Positions 14,335 to 64,000 of a DNA stretch of 64,000 nucleotides are shown piece after piece; position 1 is the stretch's first letter; each line of letters begins with the position of its first letter. The DNA is from Piromyces finnis finn (taxonomy: Eukaryota; Fungi; Neocallimastigomycota). The DNA lies in contig MCFH01000074.1 in assembly GCA_002104945.1 (NCBI GenBank), forward strand, positions 160,177-224,176, in the 5' to 3' direction. Below the pieces are notes generated by a model. It saw only the letters and a list, made by a program, of their open reading frames with translations. It was not told the DNA's origin and did not search any database. Made by a program: the position numbers and the translations under genes.

Positions 14335-14338
14335 AATA

Positions 14339-24352: not shown

Positions 24353-25129
24353 TGTAACGAAATATTATAATAATAAACACACACACTCTAATGTATCAAA
24401 TATATATGTATTTTTTTAATAATGTTTATTTATTAAATTTATTATTATAATACGACTAACTCGCTAGGTCAGTGTATTATCAAACTAAAGACGAAATAAA
24501 AAAACTAATTTTTATTAATTATTAATAAAAACACTAAAGAACTATTTTATCTTTCTTATTCTCTCTTTTATACATGAAAATTATTATTTTTTTTTTTAAT
24601 ACAATTTGATAAGTGAATTAATTACTTAATGATTGGTTATAAAAATATAATTATGAAATTTTCATTAATCTAACCTTAATGATTTTCTAGTCTAACCCTT
24701 ATCATTAGATATACCTCATTACAAGCTCCTCCTCTAAATTCGGATTCCAGACGAATTTATAAGCTAATAATTTTTTTTTTTTTTTTTAAATAGGCAGTTG
24801 ACTTCATATGAGAATTAAAAGGTGTGGTACAATGGTCGAGTAGTTGGCAATGAACTAGAAGGTTGTGGGTTCGAAGTCGGGGTTGGTAGAGTAACTTTGA
24901 TGTAAGGCGGGTTGGCGCCAAGACTAAAGTATGTCCAACAAGTACTAGAGGTTTCATAGGCAAGGTTCCAATATGGCCGTTTGATAGTACTTGTTCTTGG
25001 TAGCTTGTAAGTCCAGTAAATCCCTATGGGAGCTTCGCCAAAACGGTATCGGTTAAGTTTATTCTAAAAATTAATATTCCCTCATTTGTGTCTAAAAATT
25101 AATGAAAATTAGTTAATTTTATTATTATT

Positions 25130-25164
<35 letters not shown>

Positions 25165-33531: not shown

Positions 33532-33576
33532 TCCTAAAATTCTAGCTAATTCAACTATTTATATTCATTCTTAACA
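33532..33576. repeat. Solo LTR H1, right part
   Basis: TCCTAAAATTCTAGCTAATTCAACTATTTAT...TTAACA matches the end of H2 (60116-60161). Confidence 0.85.
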
Positions 33577-34303
33577 AATATTGATAAATAATAATTATAA
33601 ATATATTATACATTTGATATTAGTAGAAATTTTTATTATAAAATAATTATTAAATAATTTTATATAGTTTATTATAAAAATATAATTTACATAAAATCAA
33701 ATATTTTATAAATTTATATATTTGATTGGGTTAAATTATAAAAATAATTTTTATTATAAAGAATAATAATAATTTTTAGTAGAAAATGAGAAGACTTAGA
33801 TTACTAATAATAAGTTAAATTTTAATAATAGTTAATATAATTAATTAGTGAATACATAATAATATTTAAAAGACAAAAAATAAGTTTTTATATAATAAAA
33901 ATTATTGTTAAAAAGAGCGTAAGAACAATAAATAAAAGAAAATATAAAAACGAAATTAAACTTGTCTAATTTGTAATTATTGTGTTAATAATAAATAATA
34001 TTTTATAGAATAAATCTGGTGTTATTATTCTATATAAATATTATTAAAATAATAAAACTATTAAAATTATAAAATAACTTAAAATAAATTAATAAAACTA
34101 GTAGATATTGTTAAAGCTCGTACAATAGCTGTCGAGATAAAACAATATAAGATAACAGAAGAAGTAGTTAAAAAGTTGTAATATAACTACCAATCCGTTA
34201 TCAAGTGGTGGAGAACCTCAGTCGTCCCGTGGGAAAGCCGAAAATTTAAATAATTCCTATTAATTAGTATATTTAGTATAATTATCTTATTTATTTACTA
34301 AAT

Positions 34304-37146: not shown

Positions 37147-39478
37147 AACCACATTAAACATTTATATACAAATAATACGACAATTACATTACAAAAATAT
37201 ATAAAAACACAAAAATATTTACACTACGACATTTAACAAAATTTCACTTCATTTTTTTTATTTCTCTTTGAAAAAAAAAATTTTATTAATAAAAATTTTC
37301 AAATTTTTCATCATTTTTTTTATAAACCTTATTTTATATTATTTTTATCATATATATAGAAAAAAAAAAATTTAAATTTTTAAATATTTAGTATAAAAAT
37401 ATCAAAAACTTATATATTTATTATTATTTATGAATATTTTTATCAGCTACCACTAAGTCGTATCTTAGGGGAGGAAATCTTGATAAATAATAATTATAAA
37501 TATATTATACATTTGATATTAGTAGAAATTTTTATTATAAAATAATTATTAAATAATTTTATATAGTTTATTATAAAAATATAATTTACATAAAATCAAA
37601 TATTTTATAAATTTATATATTTGATTGGGTTAAATTATAAAAATAATTTTTATTATAAAGAATAATAATAATTTTTAGTAGAAAATGAGAAGACTTAGAT
37701 TACTAATAATAAGTTAAATTTTAATAATAGTTAATATAATTAATTAGTGAATACATAATAATATTTAAAAGACAAAAAATAAGTTTTTATATAATAAAAA
37801 TTATTGTTAAAAAGAGCGTAAGAACAATAAATAAAAGAAAATATAAAAACGAAATTAAACTTGTCTAATTTGTAATTATTGTGTTAATAATAAATAATAT
37901 TTTATAGAATAAATCTGGTGTTATTATTCTATATAAATATTATTAAAATAATAAAACTATTAAAATTATAAAATAACTTAAAATAAATTAATAAAACTAG
38001 TAGATATTGTTAAAGCTCGTACAATAGCTGTCGAGATAAAACAATATAAGATAACAGAAGAAGTAGTTAAAAAGTTGTAATATAACTACCAATCCGTTAT
38101 CAATATTGATACAATATTTTTATAAAGTAACATAAAATAATATTTATTTGTTTTTAGGACTAAGCAAGTGGGAATAGTATAAAGTAATATATTCTAACAA
38201 AGAAAATTAACTAAGAATAATTTATTGTAAAATTATAATAACACTAAAACTAGAATAATAATATTTGTTTTTTTTTTATAATATATATTTTTTTTTCTTT
38301 ATTTATTAATAAATATTTTAAGAGGTTTATAAGTAAAATTAAGAATAAGAATAAAATACTAAGATTTAATATCTTTAATAAAAATATAGAATTATTCAAC
38401 TAAATAATAATTCTCTTCCAAAAAAAATAATAATATAATAAAATAAAATAATCCTAAAAGTTTTACTTATTCTTTTTTTTTTATAACTTATTTTTATCTT
38501 TCCTAATTAACGTCTTTTTCTTTATAATATTTTTTTTTCTTTTTTTTCTATATCTATTTCTATCAACTCCGCTATAATACTATTATTAATTATATTACAT
38601 TGAATAAATTCTTGTACATATTTAATTACATTACTTAAATGTAAGAATTAAATTATTATTATAATTTAACCTATTTTCACCTATAATTTATTATTTCTTA
38701 TTTTTATAGTAACAACGTATCAAGACGCCCTCACTTAGTCTAGACTTCGTCCCCTGAAGTCCAGCTTAGTGTTCTTGTCATAATACCTTGAATTAATATT
38801 AAAGTTATTTTATTATTTTTTTTTATTATATTATATTATATTATATCATTTTATATTATATTATATTATATTATATTGTACTATTTATCTAAAAATGTCC
38901 TATAAATTATCTTAAAAATATAATTTAAATTTTTCTAATATTTTATATATAAAAAAATTTTTTTTTTTTTTTTTTTTTTTTTTAGGTAAGTTAACTGAAT
39001 ATTAATAACTATATAATTTATATATTATAATTTGATGTAACTATAATCTAATGATTATTATTATTATTTTTTTTTTTATATATTCATATTCTTATATATA
39101 TATATTTTTCTATTATTTTATTATTTATATATTTTTATATATTTATATATTTATTTATTCTTATGTTAATGAAATTTAAACAAACCATTTTTAAAATGTG
39201 ATCTGAAATTTGAATTTGGAAATTTTAATTTGAAATTTGAATGGATTTCATCAGGATTAAAAAAATGATTTTCAGGATGTTGTGATTATATATATATTAT
39301 TTGTTCTATGTATTCTCATTCATATCTTCTTCTTCCGTACGTATTACCATTTTATTCTATTAATATTGAATTTTAAATAAAAAAATTTTTTTTTTTATTT
39401 ATTTATTTTATTATTATTATTATTATCATCATTATTTTTTTTTTTTTTTTTTTATTATTATTATAATTTTTTTTTTAA

Positions 39479-42495: not shown

Positions 42496-43024
42496 TGCAA
42501 TGAATACTGTAAAAGGTTTATTATAATATTAGTTAATAGGTTATTAAATTAGTTAATTAAGTTAGTTATTACCTCTCTATACGAGTTAATAACTAAATAA
42601 AGTTTTATAAAAAATAATAAAAGAAGGAAAATAAATATTATAACACTAAAATAAATATAAACACTTATATAAATATTTTATGAAATAACTTTTACTTAAA
42701 TAATTATATTTTAATTATATCTTTTATTTATTAATTATAATTATCTACATTAATTATTATTATAGTTATTAATTTACTTTAATACTAACGCTAAAGTATT
42801 TAACGTTAGTTTTGACTATACTATTTAACTATATGAGTTTATTTTCTTTACCACTTGATTGGGTAAAGCAAATAAACTTCCTATTTAATTAATAACCATT
42901 AATATATGGTTATGCATATATTTGGCCAATAAATGGTGACCAGAATATATGGTTTCAATTGAAATATTTGTGGGCAAACTTATGGCCACAAATATTTCTT
43001 ACAATGCCCCCCTAAGGAGAAAAC

Positions 43025-46000
43025 CTAGGCAGGGTTTTGGACACTAACCATGAATTCCTGGTAGCATTTATCTTGAAATTCCTTGAGTAGCTTATCATAG
43101 TGGGAGTTCTTGTCAATGATATCGGCATCAACCCACTCTTGTCTAAAGTCACTAAAGGTAGCTAAGTATTGGTAGTTATCCTTCTTTCTTCTGGCATTCA
43201 TGATTTTGATAATTTTCTGGTAGCCCACTGGTGCAGGTGTTAGTTCTTCAGGTTTGTTATGGTAGGGTTCAAGTTCACTGATGTGAAACACAGGGTAGAC
43301 ATTGGGGAAAGGTGACTTGCTGATATCTAACCGGTAGTTGAGCTTGCTTTCATCAATTCCAATAACCTTGAAGGGACCGTACTTTCTTGCTTGTAGCTTG
43401 TAGAAGGGAAGAGGGTTGTAATTTTCTGGTTTTCTTAACCACACCAAATCCAGGAGCCTAATTTTAGGGTAGTTAAGTTCTCTTCTATGGTCCAAATGGT
43501 CTAAGAACCGTGTTCTTGATATGTCCAACATGTGCTTTAAGTTACCTAAGTTGTGAGCGAAGCTATCTAATATAGGAGCTTCACCAAGTGAGTGGACAAG
43601 TTCTGAGTCTTGAGGGTTCATATGTACCTGGTAGTTATACAAGGCTAGGAATGGGGACTGCTTAGTAGAACTGTGCACTGCATTATTATAACAGAACTCA
43701 GCTAAGTACAAGTACTTCAACCATTCGTCGTCATCAAAGGTCTTCACAAAGCATCTAAGGTACATACTTACGTAGGAGTTGTTACGTTCTACCTGACCAA
43801 CTGTTTCATGATGGCCAGTAGTAGCAAGGTTTACTTCTACGCCAAAGAACCCCATAATGTCCTTCCACAACTTACTAGTGAACTGGACACCACGATCCGT
43901 AGTAACCGATCTGGGACAACCATGTAACTTGAATACATGTTGTAAGTATGCTAAGGCTGTCTCTTTAGCAGTAGGCATACTCCTAAATCCCACTAAGTGT
44001 ATCATCTTGGTTAACTTATCGCTACAAACCATGATACAACCTCTTCTAGTGACTTCTGGGGGTTCTGAGGGACTACTACCTGGTTTTCTACGTTCCTTAA
44101 TAGGTAGGTCCGTCAGGAAGTCAATTTCTACTTCTTGCCAAGGTAAGTCTGTAACTTTTACCCTAGCAGCGCTACCGTACGGCTTGTGTCTGTTGTCCTT
44201 TTGGGTACAACATATGGTACAAGCTTTAATATATCCCGCAATGTCATCCTTCATTTTTGGCCAGTAGTAGTTTCTGGCTATCAGGTCATAAGTTTTATCT
44301 TTTCCCAGATGACCTGCTGTTTCACTATCGTGGTTAAGTTTTATGATTGTTTCCCTTAACACCTTTGGTACATATGTACGTTCTGGTGCATCCTTTCTAA
44401 CAATCAACCCATTAACCATCAACCACTTCTTTTTGATGAGCTTGTGGCCTCGTTTTGCGTCAAGACCATCTCTAATTTCCCTAGCAAGCTCATCCGTGTT
44501 GTAAGCTTGTTTCAGTTCTCCCACAAAGCTTACTTCTAACACCGCATAGCACTCTTCTTCCACGGGTGGAAATTCTTTTACCTGTTCAGGTCGAAGGAGG
44601 CTAGCTTTTTCCATCTCCAGTTGTACCTGTTCTGGAGATACCATTCTTGATAGGATATCGGCTCTACCATTCATTTTCCCTGGCCGATATATTATTTCGA
44701 AGTTGTATGCAGCAAACAGCTCTTGCCATCTTGCCTGTCTTGCTGTCAACAACTGTGGTTTTGTGGCGAACAGGAGATTCCTATGGTCACTATATACTAG
44801 GACCTTATGTTTCGCACCCATTAACAGGTGTCGCCACTCGATGAAAGCATTCCTAATAGCCAACAACTCCTTTTCCGTGATGGAGTAGTTGATTTCTGCT
44901 TTCGTAAGCTTCTTGGAATAGTAATACACAGGGTGTAATTCGTTGTCATCGCCTAGTTGTGATAGTACACCACCCACCGCGTAGTTACTAGCGTCGCACT
45001 CCACTATGAACTGACGGTCATGGTCAGGATATGCTAATACTGGTGGAGACAACAGCATTTCTTTTAACTTCTCGAACGCCTGGATGCGTTCTTCATTCCA
45101 CAGGAACTGTACCTTTTTGGACGTCATAGCATATAACGGCCTTGCTATCTTAGAGAAGTCCTTTATAAACTTCCTATAATAGTTGCAGAATCCAAGGAAT
45201 GACTGTAGTTCTTTAATGTTGGTTGGTTGTGGCCAACTTGCTACAGCTTTTAACTTTTCTGGGTCGGTTTTAATACCATATTTTCCAACTACATGACCCA
45301 GGAATGCAAGTTCTTCCTTGTGGAACTCACACTTCGCCAACTTAGCTACTAGACGATTATCTATTAGCTTTTGTAGGACTCTTTTTACATGCCCTACATG
45401 CTCTTCAAGTGACTTGGAGTAGATGATGATATCATCCAAGTACACTTGACAGCAATCATTGATTTCCTCTGCCAGCACCGTATTAATGAACCCTTGGAAC
45501 GTGGCAGGAGCATTAGTCAACCCAAATGGCATCACTAGATATTCATAATGCCCAAACTTGGTTGAGAATGCCGTCTTGTATTCGTCACCTTCACGAATAC
45601 GCACGAGGTTGTAGGCAGACTTCAAATCCAACTTGGAGAAGATAGTCGCGCCTTTCATAGCCTCAAACACTTGACTGATGAGTGGTAAGGGAAAGGAGTT
45701 ACGCACTGTTACCTTATTAAGACGCCTATAATCAGTACATAATCGTCTTTCACCACTCTTTTTGGGCACGAATAACACAGGATAACCTGCAGGACTTTCT
45801 GACTTCCTGATGAAGCCTTTTGCCAGGTTTTCCTCTATATATTCCTTCAGTGCTTTTTCCTCTTCTGGATTGAAGGGATATATAGGCCCTTTATGAAGAC
45901 TAGCATCCGGCTCCAGGTCGATCTTACAGTCGTAAGGACGGTGTTCTGGTAGCTGGTTAGCTATTTCTTCATTAAATGCTTCTTTGAAATTGTGGTAGTA

Positions 46001-48565
46001 CTTCTCCACGATTTCTTCAGGTGTGGGTTGATTTTCGTTTAAGTTTTCTCCCTGTACCAACCCTACGTAAATGTGATTTTTCTCTAAGTTCGACTCTTGT
46101 ACCAACCCTACTGAAACACAAGTTTTTTTTAAGTTGGATTCAAATGTCAACCCTCCGGAATCACATTTTTTCTCTAAGTCAACACTCTGTACCAACCCTA
46201 CTGAAACGGGATTTTTCTCTAAGTCAGAACTTCGTGTCAACCCTCCGGAAACACAAGTTTTCTCTAAGTTGGAACTCGATGCCAACCCTCCGGAACTTCC
46301 GTTTCTGGTTTCTTTTGTAGCCTTGTGGCTACCATTGCCCACGATTTCGGCTTCAATGTTTTCTGCGGTTACAGTTACCAGAGGCCTTCTTGCTTTTGCA
46401 TTAGTAACTGTATTTATGGGACTTAATTGAGTACAGTAGTAGATGTCACCACCATTCACACCATAACTGTTGGTATGTCCTTTATCCTTATCATTATCTA
46501 CTACGAAGTACCTCACTTGTGCATCTTTATCGTAACCTCTGTAGATAAAGTGCTCATCCATGAAGCCCAGTCCCACAATGATCATCTCCGGCATGTTGTC
46601 GGATAGGTGACAACTTGTGTTGAAGCAGTATGGTTTAGCTTCTTGTTCGCCAGATGGAGTTAACCATAACTTCAACTGCAAGTCATCTGAGAACTGCTTT
46701 AACTCGATATCTCCATTCACAGTTCTGAATATGGCTGGTTTGTCCACTACCTTTAACCCGAGCTTCTTTGCCAAATTTGGATGAATGAGGTTTGTAGTGG
46801 AACCAGTATCATACAAGACTTCTACCCTTTTTATATCTCGAGGGTTGCTTCTTGCATTTATTTCAGCTACTAATTGGTTCTGACTGTAGTAGCTGTTATT
46901 AACCGTCGTTTGACTTGCCATAGCCTTAGGTAATGGGTTATTTCCCATACTAGAAGGTCCTTGCCTTGGTTGGAAGCTAGAACTTCTTCTAAAGCTTGAC
47001 TTGTTTAATGATTCACGACGTTCTTTAATACCGTTATTGTTTTTTGCGTAAGCCTGAGTGTTGGTCTGCTCAACTTTAGGCTTATTATTTGGCTTGTTGT
47101 TCTTCTGCTTTAACTCAGCCCATCTAGATGGTCTACATGGGTCTGTGATGTCCAACAAGGCCATAATAGTGGTCTGGCGGTCTCTTTTGTCGTACTTTTC
47201 TATGGTTTCATTACGGAAGACTGCTTGGTGATCATCGCACTTTAACAAGACTTCACTTAATGTTTCCAGCGTACGTTCCTGTTCAGGGATATCATAGAAC
47301 GCTTCCCTGACAGAAGGCCTGACCTGTTGTATTAACACCTGTCTCCTAACATTTTCAGGAAGCCCAAGTGTTTCCGTCAATTCATTGAACTCTTCCAAGT
47401 AGTCGTATGCTTTTCCCCACTCATGTGTGAGTTTAAGCAACTTTGACTTGCAGAGTTCATGGGGAGACTCTGGTGGAAACTTATCTTGAAGGTGGAGGAA
47501 TAGTCTTTCAGCATCAGGATTCCTACGCTGCAGCGTCCTCTCTCTAAGTCTATACCATCTCAATACTTTACCACCTAGATGATCTTCAATGAAGCTAACC
47601 TTTGCCTTTTCGTCGTTACCATAGTCATATGGATAACGTTTGAAATGACGTAAGCACTTCTCTTGAAAACCCTCTAAGTCTATCCCATTATTATCAAACA
47701 TAGGCACTTTTTCTTCATACCTATGTACTCGCCAGTCGAACATCTTCACGTCCCCATCCTCGGAGTATTCCGTAGGGTTGGTGCTGCTACTAGTTCCAGC
47801 ACCATGAGGATTACCCGTACCACCGGTTTGATAGGATGTTCTTTCATGAGCTCTGGCTTCAGCTCTTCTGTTCATGGCTTCGACTTTAGCCTCGAACAAT
47901 TTTTCTCTTTCTTCTAGAGCGTTTCGTTGCTCCCTCAATCTGGCCATCTCTTCTTCAAGCTCTTTTTTATAAGAGACAAAGGCACTAGATTGACGGTACA
48001 ACGTTTCTTGGTTGTTTAGCACTTGCTGGTGGTCTTGTAACCTTTCCTCATGTTCTGCAGTAAAGGCATTTTCCACAGCATGCAGCTCTTCCAAGCTAAC
48101 TTGGCTAGCTGACTCATTTGCTTCCAACCTTTGATCCACTTCAACAAATTTTTGCTGAAGAGCATCGTTTATCTCGCTCTTGTAAACCTCAATACCCCGC
48201 AGTTGTTCTTCCATAGCACCCAGACGGTTTCCCATACTAGCAAACTGGCTAGATATTTCCGAAACCCATCTATTAAGAAGAACCTCAATGTGTTGCATTG
48301 GGTTTACCTCACTATTATTAGTAAAAAAGAAAGAAGGATCAACAGGGGCGGGCATAGAATCCCCCTGTTGAACCTGTAAATTCTGATTAGATTCGACCTC
48401 AGTGCTTTCGAGAAGCACCGGGGTTCGAACCCGTGACATTCCCTCTACACCATCCATGCCATCCGCGCTCGCCGCGTCAGGACGGGTCCCGTCCCTTACG
48501 AATGATGTTTTTGTGTCCAATTTATGGACACCCCGAGGGTTAGGCGACTTACCTGCGTTTTTCAT
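43025..48565 (-). CDS. C Gag-Pol polyprotein (1846 aa) with degenerate chromodomain-like tail
   Basis: Coiled-coil-like N-terminus, protease LYDTGS, 15-aa repeats, RT YLDD, RNase H, integrase HHCC/D,D35E/YGPF, C-terminal YQYLATFSDFRQEWVD. Confidence 0.95.
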   Translation of the reverse strand: MKNAGKSPNPRGVHKLDTKTSFVRDGTRPDAASADGMDGVEGMSRVRTPVLLESTEVESNQNLQVQQGDSMPAPVDPSFFFTNNSEVNPMQHIEVLLNRWVSEISSQFASMGNRLGAMEEQLRGIEVYKSEINDALQQKFVEVDQRLEANESASQVSLEELHAVENAFTAEHEERLQDHQQVLNNQETLYRQSSAFVSYKKELEEEMARLREQRNALEEREKLFEAKVEAMNRRAEARAHERTSYQTGGTGNPHGAGTSSSTNPTEYSEDGDVKMFDWRVHRYEEKVPMFDNNGIDLEGFQEKCLRHFKRYPYDYGNDEKAKVSFIEDHLGGKVLRWYRLRERTLQRRNPDAERLFLHLQDKFPPESPHELCKSKLLKLTHEWGKAYDYLEEFNELTETLGLPENVRRQVLIQQVRPSVREAFYDIPEQERTLETLSEVLLKCDDHQAVFRNETIEKYDKRDRQTTIMALLDITDPCRPSRWAELKQKNNKPNNKPKVEQTNTQAYAKNNNGIKERRESLNKSSFRRSSSFQPRQGPSSMGNNPLPKAMASQTTVNNSYYSQNQLVAEINARSNPRDIKRVEVLYDTGSTTNLIHPNLAKKLGLKVVDKPAIFRTVNGDIELKQFSDDLQLKLWLTPSGEQEAKPYCFNTSCHLSDNMPEMIIVGLGFMDEHFIYRGYDKDAQVRYFVVDNDKDKGHTNSYGVNGGDIYYCTQLSPINTVTNAKARRPLVTVTAENIEAEIVGNGSHKATKETRNGSSGGLASSSNLEKTCVSGGLTRSSDLEKNPVSVGLVQSVDLEKKCDSGGLTFESNLKKTCVSVGLVQESNLEKNHIYVGLVQGENLNENQPTPEEIVEKYYHNFKEAFNEEIANQLPEHRPYDCKIDLEPDASLHKGPIYPFNPEEEKALKEYIEENLAKGFIRKSESPAGYPVLFVPKKSGERRLCTDYRRLNKVTVRNSFPLPLISQVFEAMKGATIFSKLDLKSAYNLVRIREGDEYKTAFSTKFGHYEYLVMPFGLTNAPATFQGFINTVLAEEINDCCQVYLDDIIIYSKSLEEHVGHVKRVLQKLIDNRLVAKLAKCEFHKEELAFLGHVVGKYGIKTDPEKLKAVASWPQPTNIKELQSFLGFCNYYRKFIKDFSKIARPLYAMTSKKVQFLWNEERIQAFEKLKEMLLSPPVLAYPDHDRQFIVECDASNYAVGGVLSQLGDDNELHPVYYYSKKLTKAEINYSITEKELLAIRNAFIEWRHLLMGAKHKVLVYSDHRNLLFATKPQLLTARQARWQELFAAYNFEIIYRPGKMNGRADILSRMVSPEQVQLEMEKASLLRPEQVKEFPPVEEECYAVLEVSFVGELKQAYNTDELAREIRDGLDAKRGHKLIKKKWLMVNGLIVRKDAPERTYVPKVLRETIIKLNHDSETAGHLGKDKTYDLIARNYYWPKMKDDIAGYIKACTICCTQKDNRHKPYGSAARVKVTDLPWQEVEIDFLTDLPIKERRKPGSSPSEPPEVTRRGCIMVCSDKLTKMIHLVGFRSMPTAKETALAYLQHVFKLHGCPRSVTTDRGVQFTSKLWKDIMGFFGVEVNLATTGHHETVGQVERNNSYVSMYLRCFVKTFDDDEWLKYLYLAEFCYNNAVHSSTKQSPFLALYNYQVHMNPQDSELVHSLGEAPILDSFAHNLGNLKHMLDISRTRFLDHLDHRRELNYPKIRLLDLVWLRKPENYNPLPFYKLQARKYGPFKVIGIDESKLNYRLDISKSPFPNVYPVFHISELEPYHNKPEELTPAPVGYQKIIKIMNARRKKDNYQYLATFSDFRQEWVDADIIDKNSHYDKLLKEFQDKCYQEFMVSVQNPA
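46035..46300 (-). repeat. 45-bp (15-aa) tandem repeat, 6 units, in C pol between protease and RT
   Basis: (A/G)(C/T)CAACCCT(A/C) recurs at 46056, 46101, 46146, 46191, 46236 and 46281. Protein consensus about S(G/V)GL(V/T)xxS(N/D)LEKxxV. Confidence 0.92.
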
Positions 48566-49383
48566 TTCTAATTCGAAAATAAATTCTTTTAATAAATTAA
48601 AGAATTTATTATATAAAATATGGTTATAATGAATTTTAAAATTTAAAAATAATGAATTTTTAATGCTAAACTATTAAAAAATAATTATTTTTAATAATAA
48701 ATTTACTTCTTTTAAATATAATATTTGAATATTATATAAAATATTGTAAATAATTATTATTAAACAATAATTTAAATAAAATAAAATATGTTTTTTAAGA
48801 ATTTTTTAATAACACTAACCTAATTAAAACTAAGCTAACGTAAGAACTAACTATAAAGCGTTAGTATTGTAAAAGGTTTATTATAATATTAGTTAATAGG
48901 TTATTAAATTAGTTAATTAAGTTAGTTATTACCTCTCTATACGAGTTAATAACTAAATAAAGTTTTATAAAAAATAATAAAAGAAGGAAAATAAATATTA
49001 TAACACTAAAATAAATATAAACACTTATATAAATATTTTATGAAATAACTTTTACTTAAATAATTATATTTTAATTATATCTTTTATTTATTAATTATAA
49101 TTATCTACATTAATTATTATTATAGTTATTAATTTACTTTAATACTAACGCTAAAGTATTTAACGTTAGTTTTGACTATACTATTTAACTATATGAGTTT
49201 ATTTTCTTTACCACTTGATTGGGTAAAGCAAATAAACTTCCTATTTAATTAATAACCATTAATATATGGTTATGCATATATTTGGCCAATAAATGGTGAC
49301 CAGAATATATGGTTTCAATTGAAATATTTGTGGGCAAACTTATGGCCACAAATATTTCTTACAAATACTAGAAATAACTAAAT

Positions 49384-49454
49384 TGTCTTAGTGGTTAGTA
49401 GCTAAGACTTTGAGTCTGAATGACACTAGTTCGAGACCTCATAGATACTATTTT
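49384..49454 (+). promoter_or_regulatory. Putative Pol III type-2 (tRNA-like) promoter inside LTR D; second copy at 55468-55521
   Basis: A-box-like TGTCTTAGTGG (49384-49394, one mismatch to TRGYNNARNGG), B-box GTTCGAGAC (49429-49437), start-to-start spacing 45 nt, TTTT at 49451-49454. No acceptor stem, so it is not a tRNA. Confidence 0.6.
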
Positions 49455-50686
49455 AAAAAAATTATAATTTTATTTTATTTTATTTTATTTTTAAATTTTA
49501 TTTTATATGAAGATTATTGATTGGTTAAGAATTTTAAGTTGAAAAAATTTTATAAATTAATTTAAAAAATTTTTAGTATAAATACGAGTGAATTTTCCCA
49601 AATATTTTAAAGAATCGAGATTTTATTAATAAATAATTATATTATTAAACACTAACTTATTAAGTTAAATTCTATGTGTTTTTAATGATATTTTTATAAA
49701 TTAATAATTTACAGAATATTTTAAAGTGTTAATATTACTAAGTTATTTAGTAAATATTATAATTTGTTTTATTGTTAAAGACACATTTCTTTACAATAAA
49801 ATCTCCTTATAATATAAAAGCTTAATACCTTAGTGTTTAAGAAATTGTTATAGATAAAACTTTTAAGTTTTATTGTTGAAGCTTTTCTTTAAAGAAATAT
49901 TTTTACTTAAAGTAGTAGAATTAGTACGCTTTAGAAGCGGTATATAATTCAAACTATAAAAAGTAAAAGATTAACGGGATCGAGTTTAACCTGTACAATA
50001 ATTGGGTTGGCAGGCTCTGAGCTATTCTACTTTGAATAAGGAAGTAGGAGAATCCGAGGTACACCACGTACAAGACGCTGTAATAAGCAAGCTGGCGTGA
50101 GATTTATAGTTGTATACTATCTTTTGCTGTTTGATTATAGACCGGAAAATAGCCGGAAATGCCTTACTTTAATAAAATAATATTTCTTAATTAATACATT
50201 TTAAAATTAAGTTTTCTAATAAAACAATTTCTAATTTTTAATTATAATTATTAATTGTTAAGACAATTTATTAAAATTGTAATAATATAAAATAATATTC
50301 TTTATAACTCCTTTAGCGTGAGAAGTTAAACTCTTATACATAATACTTCTACGTTCGGATAAGGTTGATATAGGGAAAGAAAACCTGTAATAATTTTTAT
50401 TGCTAACAATAAGTTAGACACTAAAAAAAATTTTTACACCGTTCCTTTCTTTTATTAATTTAATTAATATTAACAATCGACTTTATACGTGTTATCGTGA
50501 AGAGCTACGAAGGACTTATTATAAAGAATAAAACAGGTTATATATTTGATGGTTTAACACTATATAATCTGGTTTGTATTATTATTTAATAAAAAGATTT
50601 ACTCAATTAATAAATATAATTAAATACTTTATTCTATTATTTTTACAAATTTATTAAAGCTTATTAAAGAAAACATCATAAGTACT

Positions 50687-53600
50687 ATGGAAGAGAACGA
50701 AAACAACCACATGGATAATAATAATATTTTCGAAAACGCAACTCTTAAGGATGGTTTTGCAGGGGATCGCAGGTATCTGAAGGGTTTCTTAGCTAAGGTG
50801 GAGCTAGTGTTTATGCTATATCCTGAACGGTATCAAGACGACGCAACCAAAATTCTCTATATAATATCAAGACTTTATGGGGACGCTATGAATTGGGCTG
50901 CTACTCTTATAAACAACCATGATCCGTGTCTTAATAACTACCAAGCTTTTGTTGACAGATTTAAGGCTTTTTATGGTTATAACGATGCTACCTATGTTGC
51001 AAATCAAATGCTTAGAACCTTAAAACAACGCCGATTAGGAGGAATTAGAGGCTATATCTTGGAATTTAACCGCTATGCTGATGAATCAAACTGGAATGAA
51101 CAAGCCAAAATGGATGCATTTATAGCTGGCCTTAATCAACAAGTTGCAGTTCGTATTTTGGAAATGTTTCCGGGTCCTAGGGATCTTCTTTCATTACAGA
51201 CTATTGCTTCAAGAATCGATTCAAGATTATCTACACACCATACCTTTTTCCCTTCTGGTTCAAACAATGACCAAAACCGAAAGAAAAGATCTTTTCATCA
51301 CTCTTCAAAAATAACAAAGTCCATTACAAACAGGAATAACCATGGCCCTATCTCAAACGAAGAAAAGGAAAGAAGAAAGAAAGAAAATTTTTGTGTGTAT
51401 TGTGGTGCTTCAAGTCATAAGCTTAATAATTGTCCAAAAAGAAAGAATAAAGATCGTGAAAATCCTTCACTAATATCTATTCCCACACTTATATCCGCTC
51501 CTAAAGAAGAAAACAAAACTCATAATAAAATGACAACTAAATTTAAACTTTCTTATGAACTAAATACGGATATTCTTATTGACTCAGGATCCAAACTTAA
51601 TTTAATTGATGTAGATTACTGTAACGATAATAACATTCCTTATCATGATGACGGTAACCTACCAAATATCGTTGGTATCGGTGGTCGACAATCTCTTTTT
51701 GGAATTACATCTCCTTTGAATCTTCGCTACAAAGATCATCTCTGTCGAACACAATTCTATGTAACTGATCTACCTTATTATCCTTGTATTCTTGGAATAG
51801 ACTGGCTTAAAGAACACAATCCTTCTATCGATTTCACAAAGAACAAAATTTCATTTGTATCCGATTACTGTTATAATCGTTGTATAACACTCTCCAATAA
51901 TGTCCCTGAATTTCCTGAAGAAAGATCTGCTTTTCCTGCAATGGAAAATCCTTCCTACGAACCTCCGCATGATTCATTCGCTTACCCTATATTTGTCGAT
52001 AAACAAAACATCCAATCTCAAAACGAAACTAATCGTACTTGTACTATTCTCTGTTCGGGTTCTTCAAAAAATATTAACAATTCTGTTTCTAAGAAGTCTT
52101 CTGTTAACTTTTCTACTTCGTCTCTCTCAAATCAAGAACCAACTTCTGTTTTGACTTCTTTTTCTGATTCTAATATTCATTCCAATTCTATTCTCAAATC
52201 CGATTCAAACTCTAAATCAGAACCTAATTCTTCTATTATACTTCCGGATGTTCTCTCTGACTTTGCTGATGTCTTCAATGAATCTAATGCCGAAAAACTT
52301 CCTCCACACCGTCCATACGATTGTGAAATAAAACTCAAAGAAAATTCAAAACTGTTTTATGGACCGATTTATCCCTTAACAGAAACCGAATCAATTGCTT
52401 TAGAAGAATATATAAAAGAAAATCTCAAGAAAGGATTTATTAGAAAATCAAAATCGCCTGCGGGAGCTCCTATTCTGTTTGTACCTAAGAAAAACGGTCA
52501 ACTTCGTATGTGTGTTGACTATCGCCAATTAAACTCCATAACTATTCGTGATTCTTATCCCCTTCCTCTTATACAAGATATGCTTGAACATCTTGGAAAA
52601 GGGAAGATTTTCTCAAAATTGGATCTTCGTTCTGCCTATAACTTGGTCAGGATTAAAAGTGGTGATGAATATAAAACCGCTTTTACTTGCAAGTTAGGTC
52701 ATTTTGAATACTGTGTGATGCCTTTTGGGTTGAAAAATGCACCTGCTGTTTTTCAACATTTCATTAATGATGTTCTTGAAGACGTTCTTGGTAAATTCGC
52801 TTTCTCTTACATAGATGATATTATTATTTTTTCCTCGGATTATAAATCTCATATTTCTCATGTCAAAACTGTTTTGAAACTCCTGAGGGATGCTGGGCTC
52901 TATGCTAAATTGGAAAAATGCGAGTTCTTTGTTTCTTTTATTGATTTCCTTGGTCATAGGATTTCTACTGATGGTATTCACATGGACCCAAATAAAGTTT
53001 CTTCTATTTTAAACTGGCCTACTCCATCTAATGTTAAAGAGGTTCAATCTTTTCTTGGTCTTGCGAACTACTACCGTCGATTTATTCCAAATTTTGCAAA
53101 GATCGCTCATCCTTTGCATAAACTTTTGAAGAAAAATGTTAAATTTGTATGGTCTAAAGAAGCTCAAGATGCTTTCGATTCACTCAAGTCCTTATTTGTT
53201 TCTGCTCCTGTTCTTATATTTCCTAATCGTGAACTTCCATTCATAGTCGAAACTGATTCAAGTAACTTTGCCATTGGTGCTATTCTCTCGCAAGTCTCTC
53301 CAATTGATAATATGACCCATCCAGTTGCTTTCTTTTCTCGCTCTCTTACTGGTCCTGAACGTAATTATCCAATATATGATAAAGAGCTCTTAGCTATCGT
53401 TGCTGCTCTTGAAACATGGCGTCATCTACTTAAAGGCTCTTCTTCTACTTTTAAGATTTACTCGGATCATCGAAATTTACTCTATCAAAAAAAACCTGAA
53501 AAAATGTCTCAACGTCTTGTTCGCTGGGCTTTGTTTCTCTCTGAATTTAACTTTGTTATTATTTATCGTTCTGATTCTTCTAACGGTAAGCCTGATGCCC

Positions 53601-55129
53601 TATCTCGTCGTCCTGATTATGCTATCAATTCGAATTCCTCTTCTGATGTTCCTTTTAATGTTCTTCGCCCTGAAAACTTTTGTGCCATTGTGACTTCTGT
53701 TTCGTCCATTAGTGATTCTTTTCTTTCCGAATATATAAATGATGACTTTTACAATAAAATCTGTGAATATCTTGATTGTAGGAAACCTCCAATACCTCAC
53801 CCTCAAATTGACAAATTTTCCTTAAGCAATAGTTTTCTCCTTTTTACTGACAGAATCTATGTTCCTCCAAATTGTCGTCTTTCAATTCTTAAACTCTGTC
53901 ACGACTCTCCTTCAGCTGGTCATTTCGGAATAAAGAAAACATCTTCTCTTATTGCTAGAGACTTCTGGTGGCCTTCTATTTCTTCTGATGTTAAAGACTA
54001 CGTTCGTTCTTGTGAAGTTTGTTGTCGTTCAAAAACCTTTCGTCATAAACCTTATGGTCTTCTGAATCCTCTTGATATTGCTGAGCGTCCTTGGTCATCC
54101 ATTTCAATGGATTTCATTACAGATTTGCCTTCATCTTCTGGTTTCACTTGCATTCTTGTTGTTGTTGATCATCTTACAAAAATGGTTCATCTCATTCCGT
54201 TCAAAAGTATTCCTTCCGCCGCCGAAACAGCCACAGCCTTTATTGATAATATTTTCCGTCTTCATGGCCTACCTGAATCTATTGTCTCGGATAGAGGTTC
54301 TCAATTTACCTCTAAATTCTTCCAATCCATCTGTTCCTCCCTTGGCATTGAACTTAAGTTGTCTACTCCATTTCATCATCAATCAAACGGTCAGACGGAG
54401 AGGGTGAACTCCGTTATAGAACAATATTTAAGATGTTTCTCAAATTATAAAGGTTCAAATTGGAAAAGTTTTCTTAGTCTTGCAGAATTTAGTTATAACA
54501 ACGTGGTTCAAGAATCATCCAAATTTTCTCCATTCTTTTTGAATTACGGCTTTCATCCAAAATATTCACCAGTTATTCCAGACTTATCTAAAGTCCCAAG
54601 AGCAGAAGAGTTTACAAGAGATTTTAAAACTTTAATTAATACCTTAAAAGAAAATTTAAAATCTGCCATGGAAACCCAGAAGAAGCATGCTGACAAACGT
54701 AGAAAAGAAGCTCCGAATTTTAAAGTTGGTGACAAAGTTTGGCTGGATAGTTCTTTAATTATCCACAAAGGAAATAAAAAATTTAAGCCAAGAAAACTCG
54801 GCCCATACAAAATCTTGGAAAAAATATCAAATGTTACATTTAAATTAAGTCTCCCAAAATCTATTAAGATTCATCCAGTTATTCATGTATCCAATCTCGA
54901 GAAATATGTCGAAGATAAATTTGGAAGATCTCAACCACCACCGCCACCTATTACCGTTGACAATGAAGAAGAATACGAAGTTGAAGAAATTCTGGATAAA
55001 AGAAGACATTACGGAAAAATACAATACCTGATTAAATGGAAAGGGTATTCAATCAATGAAGCTTCGTGGGAGCCTGAAGAAAATCTAAATTGCAAGGGGC
55101 TACTTAAAAAATTTAATAGAAAGAAATAA
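50687..55129 (+). CDS. D Gag-Pol polyprotein with canonical chromodomain (1480 aa)
   Basis: [14 protein letters not shown] knuckle, LIDSGS, RT YIDD, RNase H, integrase, [32 protein letters not shown]. Confidence 0.95.
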
Positions 55130-55879
55130 AAAATAGTTAAAAAATTCAAATTATATTTATTATTAATATTAAAATCACAATTATTATTATTATCAAAACT
55201 TATTAATATCATTATCAATATCAATTTTATTATTAAACAATTTATTAATATCAAATTTATCAATATTTTATTTTTAACTTTAGTAATATTAAAAAAAAAA
55301 AAAATGTATTTTATTATATTAAATGTATTTTTATAATTAAGAAAATTCACTCCTTAGTTTAGTTTATTAAAAAAGAAAAACATATATTTAAATATTAAAA
55401 TTCTAGATTCGTTTGGTATCCGAATCCTGGAGGAGGACCATGTAATGAATACTAGAAATAACTAAATTGTCTTAGTGGTTAGTAGCTAAGACTTTGAGTC
55501 TGAATGACACTAGTTCGAGACCTCATAGATACTATTTTAAAAAAATTATAATTTTATTTTATTTTATTTTATTTTTAAATTTTATTTTATATGAAGATTA
55601 TTGATTGGTTAAGAATTTTAAGTTGAAAAAATTTTATAAATTAATTTAAAAAATTTTTAGTATAAATACGAGTGAATTTTCCCAAATATTTTAAAGAATC
55701 GAGATTTTATTAATAAATAATTATATTATTAAACACTAACTTATTAAGTTAAATTCTATGTGTTTTTAATGATATTTTTATAAATTAATAATTTACAGAA
55801 TATTTTAAAGTGTTAATATTACTAAGTTATTTAGTAAATATTATAATTTGTTTTATTGTTAAAGACACATTTCTTTACA

Positions 55880-58678: not shown

Positions 58679-59307
58679 AAATTATGATACAATATTTTTA
58701 TAAAGTAACATAAAATAATATTTATTTGTTTTTAGGACTAAGCAAGTGGGAATAGTATAAAGTAATATATTCTAACAAAGAAAATTAACTAAGAATAATT
58801 TATTGTAAAATTATAATAACACTAAAACTAGAATAATAATATTTGTTTTTTTTTTATAATATATTTTTTTTTTTCTTTATTTATTAATAAATATTTTAAG
58901 AGGTTTATAAGTAAAATTAAGAATAAGAATAAAATACTAAGATTTAATATCTTTAATAAAAATATAGAATTATTCAACTAAATAATAATTCTCTTCCAAA
59001 AAAAATAATAATATAATAAAATAAAATAATCCTAAAAGTTTTACTTATTCTTTTTTTTTTATAACTTATTTTTATCTTTCCTAATTAACGTCTTTTTCTT
59101 TATAATATTTTTTTTTCTTTTTTTTCTTTATCTATTTCTATCAACTCCGCTATAATACTATTATTAATTATATTACATTGAATAAATTCTTGTACATATT
59201 TAATTACATTACTTAAATGTAAGAATTAAATTATTATTATAATTTAACCTATTTTCACCTATAATTTATTATTATTTCTTATTTTTATAGTAACAACGTA
59301 TCAATAT

Positions 59308-60161
59308 TGCTACGGTTCAAATAAGATATCACAAAACACTTGAATAGTTATAAAAATAAAAATTTATTTAATTTTAATTTTTATTCATTTAATTTTTGAT
59401 TTTTCAATTTTTAAAATTTTTCTCAAAAATCCTCGTACTTTTTCCAACTATCCATTATTTGAAATTTAATGGTTTTGGATAGCTAAGGATTTAAATTGAT
59501 TTCATTCATAATATATGGATCATTCACTGTAACATATATTAATTAAATCCTTAATATATATTATGAATAATCTCTTAATATTTGAATAGAAAAATTTTTA
59601 ATTTATAATTAATAAAATTTTAATTTATGATATGTGTAACATTTTTGCATATCATATATTATATATTTAATTATGACATATAATAAAATTATATTATTCA
59701 ATTAATTATGCCCTTTTTTAGACATAAATAATAATTTTTCTGTCGAGGTATCTTCTGTTTTGTGTGTAACAGTTGCCTCTTTTAGTAAAAATTATAATTA
59801 AATTCTATGTCATAATTTCAAATTATAAAATATTATACAATAAAGTTAATTAATAAAATAAACCTTAAATAATAATAAAATGCCTATAACTATTTTAATA
59901 ATAAAATTTTGTAAAATTTATAAGTATAAAATATTATAAGTAATTATACTAATACTAATAATAAAGGTCTTAAATAACTATATACAAATAATATAACTAT
60001 ATAATAAAAATATTAATAATTACTAGAAAAATGTATAAAAATTATATATTATAATTTTTATATTTTAAAAATAGAGTTAAACACTAGTAAGGAATATAAA
60101 TAGTTGAAGGTTAATTCCTAAAATTCTAGCTAATTCAACTATTTATGTTCATTCCTTAACA
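59308..60161. repeat. Solo LTR H2
   Basis: Colinear with H1, with scattered substitutions. TG...CA ends, flanked by ATAT on both sides. Confidence 0.88.
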
Positions 60162-60165
60162 ATAT

Positions 60166-61106
60166 TGTAGTAATTTCTTATTATTGTTTACAGAAATTAC
60201 TATCTACAATAATATTAACGAACAATATTGTAGTATTATTATGCGGAAATAAGAAGTATTGAACAAATTAGAATAGAAAATAGAAAGTAAAAATAAAACT
60301 TATCGAGTTTATTATAAAGATTTATAATAAACAACCAAACACAAAGAGTCAAATGGGTCGTAAGTTTTTTTATTTAAATTACTGATTTATTAGAAGGATA
60401 TTTTATTTAATTAAAAAGAAAAATGTATTTATGTTATTTATTATAACGTATTCCTTTATAATAATAACTCTTGAATTTCTAAGGAATTTCAAGAGTGTTT
60501 TATTTATAATTTTATTAAAAAATAAGGTTAAATAAACGGGTTCTAATCTTAACAAATAAAATGTTTAGGAAAAGACTAGAAGAAAAACCTAAACATGATT
60601 TTCGATCAATATTCTAGTCATATTGATCTTCGTGTAATTTTAAGTAAAACCGAATGCTTCTTTAAAGCGAAATCGGGAAAACCTTAAAATTCCGATTCCT
60701 ATTTTATCCGTGCTTAATACAATACATAAAATATAATTAATACATAATTTAAAACAATAAGTGTAATGAATATAGTTAGTCAAAATTAAATGTATAAGAT
60801 AAATAATAAGTAAGTAAATTATTTATATTAATTAAATGTACATAAAAATTAATAATTAAATAAATTTATAAAGTTAATTAAATATATAAGAATATAGCAA
60901 GTAAATAAATTTTATATTTTATATAAGTGTATAAAAAATTAATATTTTAAGTAAATCATAAGTATTAACTAAATGAATGAAATATTAAATAATTTAATAA
61001 ATTATTAGTAATAGTTGAATGTATAGAAAATAATAATTTAAATAAATTTGTATTAAATAATAAGAAATAATAATTATTCAATTATGAATAATTAATATTT
61101 CTTACA
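60166..61106. repeat. Solo LTR F (941 bp) abutting the tRNA gene
   Basis: TGTAG...CTTACA, 5-bp TSD AATAT (60161-60165 / 61107-61111), ends 14 bp upstream of the tRNA +1. Confidence 0.82.
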
Positions 61107-61120
61107 AATATATTTAAGTA

Positions 61121-61213
61121 GCTCGTGTAGCCTAGAGGTTTAAGGCGTCGTGCTTATAAGGGTGATCCTCTTATGCAACGCGAAGATCGCGGGTTCGACC
61201 CCCGCCATGAGCA
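61121..61213 (+). tRNA. tRNA-Ile (anticodon TAT) with 19-nt intron at 61159-61177
   Basis: Acceptor stem GCTCGTG/CATGAGC, anticodon arm TCGTG-CTTATA^A-CGCGA, T-arm GCGGG-TTCGACC-CCCGC, intron one base 3' of the anticodon, T-tract downstream. Resembles yeast tRNA-Ile(UAU). Confidence 0.96.
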
Positions 61214-61598: not shown

Positions 61599-64000
61599 TG
61601 TAAGGAACTAGTGTTCAATAAATAAAAACACAAATATATAAAAAGGAAAAAAATAAAAGCAAATAAAATTTTTATTATTGAACACTTAACAAAATTATAA
61701 CAGGTTAGTGTTTAATAATTTTATTTTATTATAAAAATTTTTGTTAATAAAAACTCTAATTAAAAAATATTTTTTTAAAGAAATTTCACTCGTATTTATA
61801 TAAAAATTTTAAAATTAAATTTATAAAAATTTTACAACTTAATTTTTAAGACCAATCAGAAATTATTTTTTTTGGTAAAACTTTGTTATAAAAATATTTT
61901 AATAATTAATAAAAGAGATTAATGAGGTTTCGAACTCGAGTAGTCCAAACCAAGGTCTTAGCTACTAACCACTAAGACAGGTTACTAATTTCTATGATTC
62001 GTTACATGGTCCTCCTCTAGGATTCGGATACCAGACGAATCAACTAAATTTAGTTGTTATTTTATTATAAAAAGAAATAATTAAAACAAGTGAATACATT
62101 TTGATAAAATTTTTTTTTTAATTACATGAATATTAAATTATAAATATATTTTTTCATTTTCGATTTTCTATTCTTTTTTTCTCTTGTCAATTACTAGATT
62201 TTTTTTAAATAATAACTATTACTAATGTGAATTATTAAAATTTTTAATTAGTTCATCACAGTTTAAATTGCTTTCAGGTTCCCAAGATGCTTCTGAAAGC
62301 GGATAACCTTTCCATTTTATAAGATATTGAATCTTCCCATAATGCTTTCTTTTATCAAGTATTTCTTCTACTTCGTATTCTTCTTCCTCATTTATTATAA
62401 TAGGTGGAGGTGGATCTTTGATATTTCCAAAACTATCTTCATAGTATGGTTCTAGGTTCGAAACATGAACAATTGGGTAAATCTTCAGTGATTTTGGTAA
62501 TTCTAATTTATAAGTGAGATTAGAGATTTTACTGATTATCCTGAACGGGCCAAGTTTCCTAGGATTAAATTTTTTATTTCCTTTATGAATTATCAAGGAG
62601 CTATCCAACCATACTTTGTCACCTGTCTTGAATGCCGGAGGTTCTTGTCTATACTTGTCGGCATATTTCTTTTGAACTTGGATGGCCTTCTTTAGGTTTT
62701 CTTTAAGTTTCTCCATTTGGTCTTCAAAGTCTCTTGTAAATTCTTCAGCTCTTGGAACATTCGTTTGGTCAGGAATTATCGGAGAGTATTTTGGGTGATA
62801 ACCATAATTTAGGAAGAATGGTGAGAATTTTGTTGAATCTTGAACAGCATTATTGTAGCTGAATTCTACCAATGGAAGGAGATTGATCCAGTTTGTTCCT
62901 TTATAATTAGAAAAGCATCTTAAATATTGTTCAACAACGGGGTTTACCCTCTCCGTTTGGCCATTGGATTGATGATGATATGGTGAAGAATATTTAACAT
63001 TGACGTCCAAAGCTCGGCAAATAGATTTCCAAAATCTCGAAGTGAATTGCGCGCCTCTATCGGAAATAATTTCAGAGGGGAAACCGTGAATTCTGAAAAT
63101 ATAATTCAAAAAAGCAAAAGCAGTATCAGAAGCAGATAGAATACCTTTAAAGGGAATGAGGTATCACATTTTTGTAAGGCGGTCAACTACAACAAGAATA
63201 GTATTAAATCCATCAGAAGGAGGCAGTAATGAAATCCATGGAAATAGAAGCTCAAGGATGGTCACTAATCTCAAGGGCTTGAAGTAAGCCATATGGTTTG
63301 TGACGAGAAGGCTTTGAGCGGCAACAAATCTCGCAAGATCGGATATAATTCTTAACATCAATAGAAATGGATGACTACCAAAAGTCACGAGAGATCAAAG
63401 AAATAGTTTTGCGGATACCAAAATGACCGGCAGAAGGGGAATCATGACAGAGCTTCAAAACGGAGGGAAGGCATTTTAAAGGAACATAGATTCTATTATC
63501 AAAAAGAAGAAAACTATTACTAAGAGAGAATTTGTTACTTTGTGGATGTGGAGCTGGGAGATTCTTATTTTCAAGAAAATTGCAAATGTCAATGTAAAAA
63601 GAGTCGTTCACATATTCAGATAATATTTCATCATTAAGAGAAGAAATGGGACAAATCAAAGCGAAGAAATTCTCAGGTCGTAAAACCGAAAATGGAGCAT
63701 CAGAAGGAAGAGAGGAATCCATATAATCAGGTCTTCTTGAAAGCGCATCAGGTTTACCATTAGATGAACCAGAGCGGTAGAGAATTTTAAAGTTAAAAGA
63801 GCCAAACGAAAAAGACGTTGTGACATTTTTCCGGTTTCTTTTGATATAATAAGTTTTGATGATCTGAATAAATAGTAAACGAAGATAAAGCACCTTTGAG
63901 AAAATGTCGCCAAGTTTCAAGAGCATTAGCAATAGCTAAAAGTTCTTTATCGTATATAGGATAGTTTCTTTCAGCGGAAGTAAGAGATCTTGAATAGAAA
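61599..64000 (-). mobile_element. 3' part of chromovirus element E (D-related), frameshifted, runs off the window
   Basis: 3' LTR 61599-62006, PPT AGAGGAGGA at about 62010-62018, RNase H/integrase fragments (63164-64000, several frameshifts), integrase C-terminus and canonical chromodomain in 62222-63109. Confidence 0.9.
61927..61979 (-). promoter_or_regulatory. Putative Pol III A/B-box cassette in LTR E
   Basis: TGTCTTAGTGG (61979-61969) and GTTCGAAAC (61935-61927), spacing 44 nt, homologous position to the cassette in LTR D. Confidence 0.6.

Follow-up and report, generated by a model that had tools for sequence, protein, structure and literature searches.

Kojima (2024, PMC10886601) groups the retrotransposons Helenus, with tRNA-like LTRs, and Cassandra, with 5S LTRs, under the collective name TRIMp3. 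According to that paper (PMC10886601), both are non-autonomous TRIMs of 0.3-1.3 kb, their own promoter is presumably the Pol III promoter, Helenus is found in fungi, and its tRNA-like LTR sequences are probably not functional tRNAs. Targeting of these tRNA-like LTRs by other elements is not described there, as far as the accessible part of the paper goes (PMC10886601). For Ty3 it is established that integration is targeted via the TFIIIC/TFIIIB complex, and for Tj1 and DGLT-A this has been inferred (PMC4600332, PMC5006619, PMC6101501). In addition, integrations of TRE5-A on the Dictyostelium rDNA element have been used to infer the sites of Pol III complexes (PMC5391098).

LTRs with Pol III promoter sequences and retrotransposons that target Pol III genes meet at the locus analyzed here, a combination that we did not find described in the literature searched. 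In it we found no report of a Pol III unit inside an LTR that other retrotransposons use as a target for integration, and a literature search on the retrotransposons of anaerobic fungi gave no relevant result. Like Helenus and the other TRIMp3 elements, the chromovirus studied here (element D) carries in its LTR a tRNA-type sequence with A and B boxes. Unlike them, it is a 6.5-kb autonomous element with gag-pol, it has its own conserved TATA block, and a terminator directly follows the unit. Like Ty3 of S. cerevisiae, Tj1 of S. japonicus (PMC4600332) and DGLT-A of Dictyostelium (PMC5006619), the elements that insert here (among them C, T2 and T4) are of the Ty3/gypsy type, lie ~11-17 nt upstream of the coding regions of tRNA genes and have TSDs of 5 bp. 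They differ from these in being new families in another host, in the strong polarity bias of C (41:2), and in that retrotransposon-borne units, not host genes, make up about half of the Pol III-type sites recorded for C. As in the TRE5-A study (PMC5391098), we take it as a sign of Pol III factor binding when elements have integrated at the canonical distance from an A/B-box-like sequence without an annotated gene. However, that study dealt with the host rDNA palindrome by experimental profiling, whereas ours are sites on mobile elements, numbering ~290 or more, with natural integrations fixed in an assembly.

The window and its resident elements

The window, i.e. the whole 64,000-nt stretch of DNA that was analyzed, consists of nested LTR retrotransposons, and the host assembly has 56,455,805 bp, 232 contigs and ~20% GC. 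Comparison of the window with itself and direct reading place chromovirus D at 42496-55879 on the plus strand, with 438-nt LTRs (TG..CA) and TSD ATCCA. Its 5' LTR is split by element C into 42496-42507 and 49364-49795, and its 3' LTR is at 55442-55879. The ORF at 50687-55129 encodes a 1480-aa Gag-Pol protein with Gag, PR, RT, RNase H, integrase and a chromodomain (PF00385, E = 3e-15, residues 1430-1479), which at the C-terminus of the integrase meets the criterion for a chromovirus. The element has a TATA box at 49577-49584, a PPT (GGAGGAGGACCA) just 5' of its 3' LTR, and a PBS of the self-priming type at 49796. Self-priming appears to be like that of Tf1/Tj1: the sequence ATAAAATCTC behind the 5' LTR (49796-49806) is complementary to GAGATTTTAT (49617-49626), which sits ~40 nt past the TATA box, and the related lineage D2 has a matching double change, ATAAAAACTC with GAGTTTTTAT (locus L043, about 2410-2440).

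Element C (42508-49363, minus strand) is a Ty3/gypsy element with 496-nt LTRs (TG..CA) that are 99.8% identical, and its 5-bp TSD AATAC is present at 42503-42507 and 49364-49368. Its ORF at 43025-48565 encodes 1846 aa and is 42% identical to D in Pol. A Pfam search of this ORF gave no chromodomain match; the C-terminus of the protein aligns weakly with the start of the D chromodomain. The ORF also contains tandem 45-nt repeats in four to six copies (46032-46295).

ARAGORN predicts one real tRNA gene in the window, an intron-containing gene with the anticodon loop CTTATAA at 61121-61213 on the plus strand. The terminus of LTR-element F (..ATTTCTTACA) ends at 61106, 14 nt before the tRNA +1 and 21 nt before T8 (61128), the latter being the distance given in an earlier reading of this DNA from its sequence alone (hereafter the sequence-only reading). 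Several elements are stacked 5' of this gene. We inspected positions 14300-14340, 33555-33600, 38085-38125, 59285-59325 and 61080-61135, and between the elements there are AATA, ATAT or AATAT remnants that match the tRNA-proximal AATAT at 61107-61111. Judged by sequence, these remnants fit what repeated integration at one spot would be expected to leave. They also fit the insertions of elements I, G and H2 that the sequence-only reading had reconstructed upstream of the tRNA gene, although we did not re-derive that reconstruction in full. A T2-type terminus ends at 14334, among the stacked elements.

A tRNA-gene-sized unit in the LTRs of one chromovirus clade

Direct reading and a box scan identified in U3 of the D 5' LTR a Pol III-type unit of the size of a tRNA gene (49377-49454, plus strand). 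Counting from a nominal +1 at 49377, it consists of an A box TGTCTTAGTGG (49384-49394), a B box AGTTCGAGACC (49428-49438) and a T-run TTTT (49451-49454) 12 nt past the B box. The A box makes up the 5' arm and the loop of a hairpin of 7-8 bp (hairpin 1, 49385-49408). The sequence-only reading had reported an A box and a B box 45 nt apart followed by TTTT, which is what we found: its B box GTTCGAGAC begins at 49429, 45 nt past the A-box T at 49384, and lies within the full B box, whose offset of 44 nt equals the distance between tRNA positions 8 and 52. An identical unit is present on the plus strand in the D 3' LTR (55461-55538; A box 55468-55478, B box 55512-55522, TTTT 55535-55538), where 26 nt of LTR separate the PPT from the unit. 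The 3' LTR of the related chromovirus E has a homologous unit on the minus strand (61911-61986), with the A box at 61979-61969, the B box AGTTCGAAACC at 61936-61926, TTTT at 61914-61911 and an A-to-B offset of 43. The 24-nt A-box hairpin is identical in E and the spacer has diverged, so the earlier statement that E keeps the hairpin exactly, together with a B box, is correct, as are all the other statements on sequence from that reading that we checked.

Both boxes of the D unit are close to the consensus. The A box matches eight of the nine specified positions of TRGCNNAGTGG, the deviation being T for G10, and the B box matches eight of nine positions of GGTTCGANNCC, which is placed 30-60 nt past the A box, the deviation being A for G52. 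There are at least four T's at 11-20 nt past the B box in D, D2, E and the two metagenomic relatives introduced below (L122 and L123), and no TTTT inside the units. The terminator criterion is thus met, but it is weak by itself because the genome is AT-rich. We searched the window on its two strands for A boxes followed by a B box at tRNA spacing and obtained only five sites, i.e. the real tRNA gene, the two LTRs of D, the LTR of E and one further unit at 24825-24878. In the whole genome the 24-nt hairpin occurs 289 times with no more than three mismatches, versus none for the reversed control. Annotation of this genome has to deal with sequences, ~290 or more of them, that look like tRNA promoters without belonging to tRNA genes.

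The LTR unit is not a tRNA. ARAGORN made its only call in the window at 61121-61213 and none at the LTR unit, and a search of Rfam with E values up to 10 gave no tRNA match at the unit. By direct reading, the would-be acceptor and T stems of the D unit are unpaired, and its MFE fold has two hairpins and no cloverleaf; the MFE z-scores of -1.4 (D) and -2.4 (E) are unremarkable alone. We therefore rejected the tRNA assignment and regard the unit as a promoter look-alike. Descent from tRNA-Gln was also considered, as the D spacer has C-T-TTG-A-G at the anticodon-loop position with four of five flanking pairs. This loop is not shared by E, L122 and L123, so we do not use it as evidence. A role of the unit RNA as the primer of reverse transcription was rejected as well: the 3' end of the unit has no complementarity to the PBS, and D looks self-primed. 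Pol III cannot make the genomic RNA of D, since the T-run terminator lies directly after the unit; the TATA block of D is separate from the unit, ~190 nt downstream, and conserved.

The unit is conserved across several lineages. D is represented by ~100 exact hairpins in the genome, with LTR pairs ~6.08 kb apart, and E2 by ~81 copies, with pairs ~5.72 kb apart. The E lineage is the copy in the window, D2 is locus L043, and D3 is a further lineage with the A-box variant TGTCTTAATGG. One scan of public metagenome contigs gave the relatives L122 and L123; no mention of the accessions of these contigs was found in papers. We aligned five lineages, namely D, D2, E, L122 and L123, with Gag-Pol identities to D of 75% for L122, 63% for L123 and 64% for E.

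The three-way LTR alignment of D, D2 and E has 52% invariant columns. Its two longest conserved blocks are the A-box hairpin, with 17 + 7 invariant positions and one loop change between them, and the Pol II TATA block. The spacer of 18-19 nt between the boxes has diverged in these three lineages, and the T-run is kept 11-13 nt past the B box. In all five lineages the A box TGTCTTAGTGG and the AGTTCGA of the B box are invariant and C61 is kept, and position 62 varies only in D2, which has T there instead of C. L122 and L123 retain the full hairpin, including 9 nt outside the requirement of the search pattern, and they have the B box AGTTCGATTCC, a downstream T-run and yet another spacer; in L123 the hairpin region is the sole part of the LTR that can still be aligned to D. 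The sequence-only reading had inferred selection on the boxes and proposed to compare them with their flanks in D/E-family LTRs. This comparison supports the inference: the hairpin is among the two longest conserved blocks, the B-box core does not vary, and the boxes are kept while the spacer has diverged in five lineages, including the two that come from unrelated metagenome contigs.

Some older LTR copies (L026, L065, L069-72, L077, L083, L108, L111-116) have CpG changes in the B box (GTTCAAG, GTTTGAG) or GTTA[AG]AG. GTTCAAG is still within the consensus (R57); GTTTGAG and GTTA[AG]AG would inactivate C56. Some of the copies with a mutated B box have been hit by insertions, which perhaps predate the mutation.

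Insertions upstream of the LTR units and of real tRNA genes

We retrieved 90 LTR copies with the exact hairpin. Among them 35 are 3' LTRs behind a PPT, 27-28 are intact 5' or solo LTRs, and 27 are abutted, 17-24 nt before the A-box T, by a foreign LTR terminus (..ACA or ..TCA). In BLAST alignments, 29 of 93 copies are homologous to the D LTR only from a point within nt 3-12 onward, and there are no more than nine breakpoints across the remaining 426 nt, which is an enrichment of roughly 100-fold per nucleotide. The abutting termini come from at least eight families, i.e. C, F-like (..AATTCTTACA), T2 (..GGTTCCTTAACA), T3 (..CATTCCTTAACA), T4 (..GTAGCGTATCA), T5, T6 and T7. Six insertions are in 5' LTRs of full-length elements and 14 in 3' or solo LTRs. 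The insertion of C in the window lies after nt 12 of the D 5' LTR, and its last base (49363) is exactly 20 nt before the A-box T with the TSD AATAC, as had been read from the sequence. In two-sided cases the first 10-12 nt of a D-type LTR and the 5-bp TSD (AATAC, ATCAT or TGAAT) are found beyond the inserted element, and therefore the foreign element entered the LTR and not the reverse. When junctions with an identical offset and LTR variant are counted once, there are ~30 independent events, 16 for C and 14 for the other families; assembly or segmental duplicates are possible among them. The idea of a landing pad for tRNA-targeting elements, put forward earlier on the basis of one event, can now be judged by these ~30 events from at least eight families, all of them 17-24 nt upstream of the A box.

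The same elements insert at real tRNA genes. ARAGORN runs on 30 loci with a C LTR placed the C terminus 11-13 nt from the +1 of tRNA-iMet, Arg(TCT), Trp and Ser(GCT) genes. We also counted junctions genome-wide using patterns made of a terminus, a gap and the A-box consensus, with reversed patterns as controls. Only C, T2 and T4, of the at least eight terminus families, were examined at real tRNA genes. C gave 41 junctions, 21 at tRNA genes and 20 at LTR units (control 0), the latter spread over the LTRs of D, D2, D3 and E2. Its distance to T8 is 18-21 nt (mode 19) at tRNA genes and 17-22 nt (mode 20) at the unit. For T2 we found 10 tRNA-gene junctions (control 0), with distances of 21-23 nt at tRNA genes and 20-22 nt at the unit, and for T4 there are 13 (control 0), with 20-24 nt and 21-23 nt, respectively. 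The orientation of C at A boxes is the same in 41 cases versus two opposite ones, both at real tRNA genes. As the opposite orientation was seen only twice, the polarity bias is common to tRNA genes and LTR units.

The family-specific spacing and polarity are thus reproduced at the LTR unit. C, T2 and T4 fit the Ty3-like pattern of short TSDs and of insertion into the ~20 nt that precede tRNA genes, many different ones in each case. The landing-pad geometry proposed from the window alone agrees with these data, as all three families keep the same distances from real tRNA genes and C also the same polarity. A search with RF00005 scored 63 of ~2914 rough tRNA candidates, and the total number of tRNA genes is undetermined; hence the per-site rates of units and tRNA genes cannot be compared.

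A few further observations concern these sites. The ~2900 rough candidates suggest a very large or repeat-inflated tRNA complement, and one tRNA gene (tRNA-Arg TCT type) has at least 33 copies with an identical score. Locus L101 (G000:C192:124294-125755, minus strand) is a tandem array with a unit of ~211 nt, made of 31 nt of host flank joined to nt 1-180 of a D LTR, the Pol III-type unit included. Two of its three units were hit by C-type LTRs at slightly different positions (one with TSD TGAAT, one with the junction after ..AATAC). At two other loci, L083 and L113 (G000:C156:58433-59183 and C200:874869-875619), an element ending in ..ATATTTTACA sits inside a D-type PPT, 36 nt before the A-box T, and may represent a family with a different spacing rule.

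Possible nature and roles of the LTR unit

Our analysis makes it likely that the LTR start in the D clade is a type-2 Pol III promoter unit, which assembles factors like a tRNA gene and hence is a landing site for tRNA-targeting elements; binding and transcription are inferred. We propose that the first ~95 nt of the LTR (U3) in one chromovirus clade (D, D2, D3, E and E2) would act as a compact unit of A box, B box and oligo-T. Most likely this unit would assemble TFIIIC and TFIIIB, oriented as at a tRNA gene, which we infer from the integration behaviour without any binding data, and by analogy only, the oriented complex would be what Ty3-like integrases recognise. If the Ty3-like elements of the genome are directed in this way to 11-17 nt upstream of tRNA genes, they would for the same reason integrate 17-24 nt upstream of the LTR A box, with the same polarity. 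The D-clade LTRs would then be a major landing site that drives nesting.

Since tRNA-targeting elements land upstream of the look-alike about as often as upstream of tRNA genes, the cell very probably handles it as a real RNA polymerase III gene, although there is no factor-binding or RNA evidence for this. Transcription of the unit by Pol III into an RNA of ~70 nt is likewise only inferred, without RNA evidence. The LTR is present in public runs only as Logan contigs, which are of uncertain type and broken at repeat boundaries, and hence are uninformative on small RNA. Because the A box is at a constant distance from the LTR end in every lineage, sequence alone cannot separate measuring from the A box and measuring from the LTR terminus.

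An alternative hypothesis could be that the two-hairpin segment by the PPT is mainly a cis-acting replication signal, for plus-strand priming, packaging or RNA 3'-end structure, with the likeness to the boxes being secondary, Pol III factors opportunistic and the insertions a side effect. We consider this unlikely, though not negligible. The entire 24-nt hairpin is invariant and not the A box alone, the unit lies 26 nt past the PPT/LTR boundary, and the spacer is approximately the reverse complement of the B box, forming a helix 2 that is 80% paired on the five-lineage alignment, with two pairs changed on both sides (UA/AU and CG/UA). This covariation is weak, however, since it rests on five sequences and 25 of 500 shuffles reach its score, and the register of the helix varies between lineages. 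Going by these alignments, part of the constraint may be structural and not related to a promoter. A replication signal would leave unexplained the 44-nt spacing that is exactly that of tRNA, the CC at positions 61-62 in four of five lineages (CT in D2) and the retained T-run. Moreover, no such hairpins are present in the LTR of a related chromovirus (24353-29799) that has the PPT region in common with D, so they are not a general requirement of replication.

The hot spot could also be unrelated to Pol III, if integrases prefer some sequence or structure at the start of the D/E LTRs, where an AT-rich ..GAATACTAG.. stands beside the hairpin, and the tRNA-like distance is a coincidence. Such a preference would account for the TSD AATAC common to many insertions, and the distance from LTR end to A box is fixed in all lineages. 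But the same families are found upstream of at least ten different real tRNA genes, with upstream sequences that resemble neither one another nor the LTR, and at equal distance in four LTR lineages with differing upstream sequences (..AATACTAGAAATAACTAAAT, ..ATCATAGAAATTAGTAACC, ..ATCATAGAAATAAAGAAAT and ..TATTAGAAATTTAATAT). Together with the identical polarity bias at tRNA genes and units and the convergence of eight families with different termini on one 8-nt window, this makes a purely sequence-driven hot spot very improbable. We give hardly any credence to the view that a tRNA gene or a tRNA-derived SINE was once captured in an ancestral LTR and that the unit is its neutral remnant, without function or factor binding. 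The length and numbering of the unit do fit a tRNA exactly, the D spacer resembles an anticodon loop (CTTTGAG), and many Repbase LTRs contain tRNA-like pieces, probably from SINE insertion, as reported by Kojima (2024, PMC10886601). However, the boxes and the T-run are intact while the spacer and other LTR parts diverge at Gag-Pol identities of 63-75%, the anticodon-like loop is not shared by E, L122 and L123, and a dead relic would not attract tRNA-targeting elements.

Under our preferred reading of a Pol III type-2 promoter unit, its role for the chromovirus could be that of a TFIIIC barrier shielding the TATA promoter when the element lies in heterochromatin. The unit could also encode a small RNA with two hairpins or act as a replication signal next to the PPT; all three are candidates only, without assay data. 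TFIIIC-bound B boxes act as chromatin barriers in budding and fission yeast, where they are known as tDNA, ETC and COC barriers. Similar to these, D has a B-box unit upstream of a Pol II promoter, and its chromodomain implies integration into heterochromatin, which gives a rationale for this candidate but no barrier data. We tentatively speculate, without regarding it as probable, that the chromovirus clade keeps its own Pol III unit under selection, as a TFIIIC barrier or as a gene for a two-hairpin RNA of ~70 nt, and has thereby become a principal safe harbour for Ty3-like tRNA-targeting elements, so that one family provides several others with their integration niche and seeds the growth of nests. 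An adaptive role as a decoy is unproven.

The ~30 independent integrations act like an in-vivo footprint, and they indicate that a non-tRNA sequence of ~75 nt is treated as a Pol III gene. They also reveal an interaction between transposons in which one family multiplies the landing sites of others, and the multiplied sites may explain how the large nests of this genome can grow at a distance from tRNA genes. Small, shaped by natural selection and made of boxes only, the unit is a minimal module.

A second Pol III-type unit, unrelated to the LTR unit, is present in the window at 24790-25165 on the plus strand, with an A box TGGTACAATGG at 24825 and a B box GGTTCGAAGTC at 24868 (offset 43). Its position is within the 3' UTR of a minus-strand chromovirus (24353-29799), to which it is antisense; this chromovirus has the PPT region in common with D, and its LTR is without boxes. 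With a GC-richer body of ~300 nt and long T-runs on its flanks, the second unit looks like a SINE-like insertion or module.
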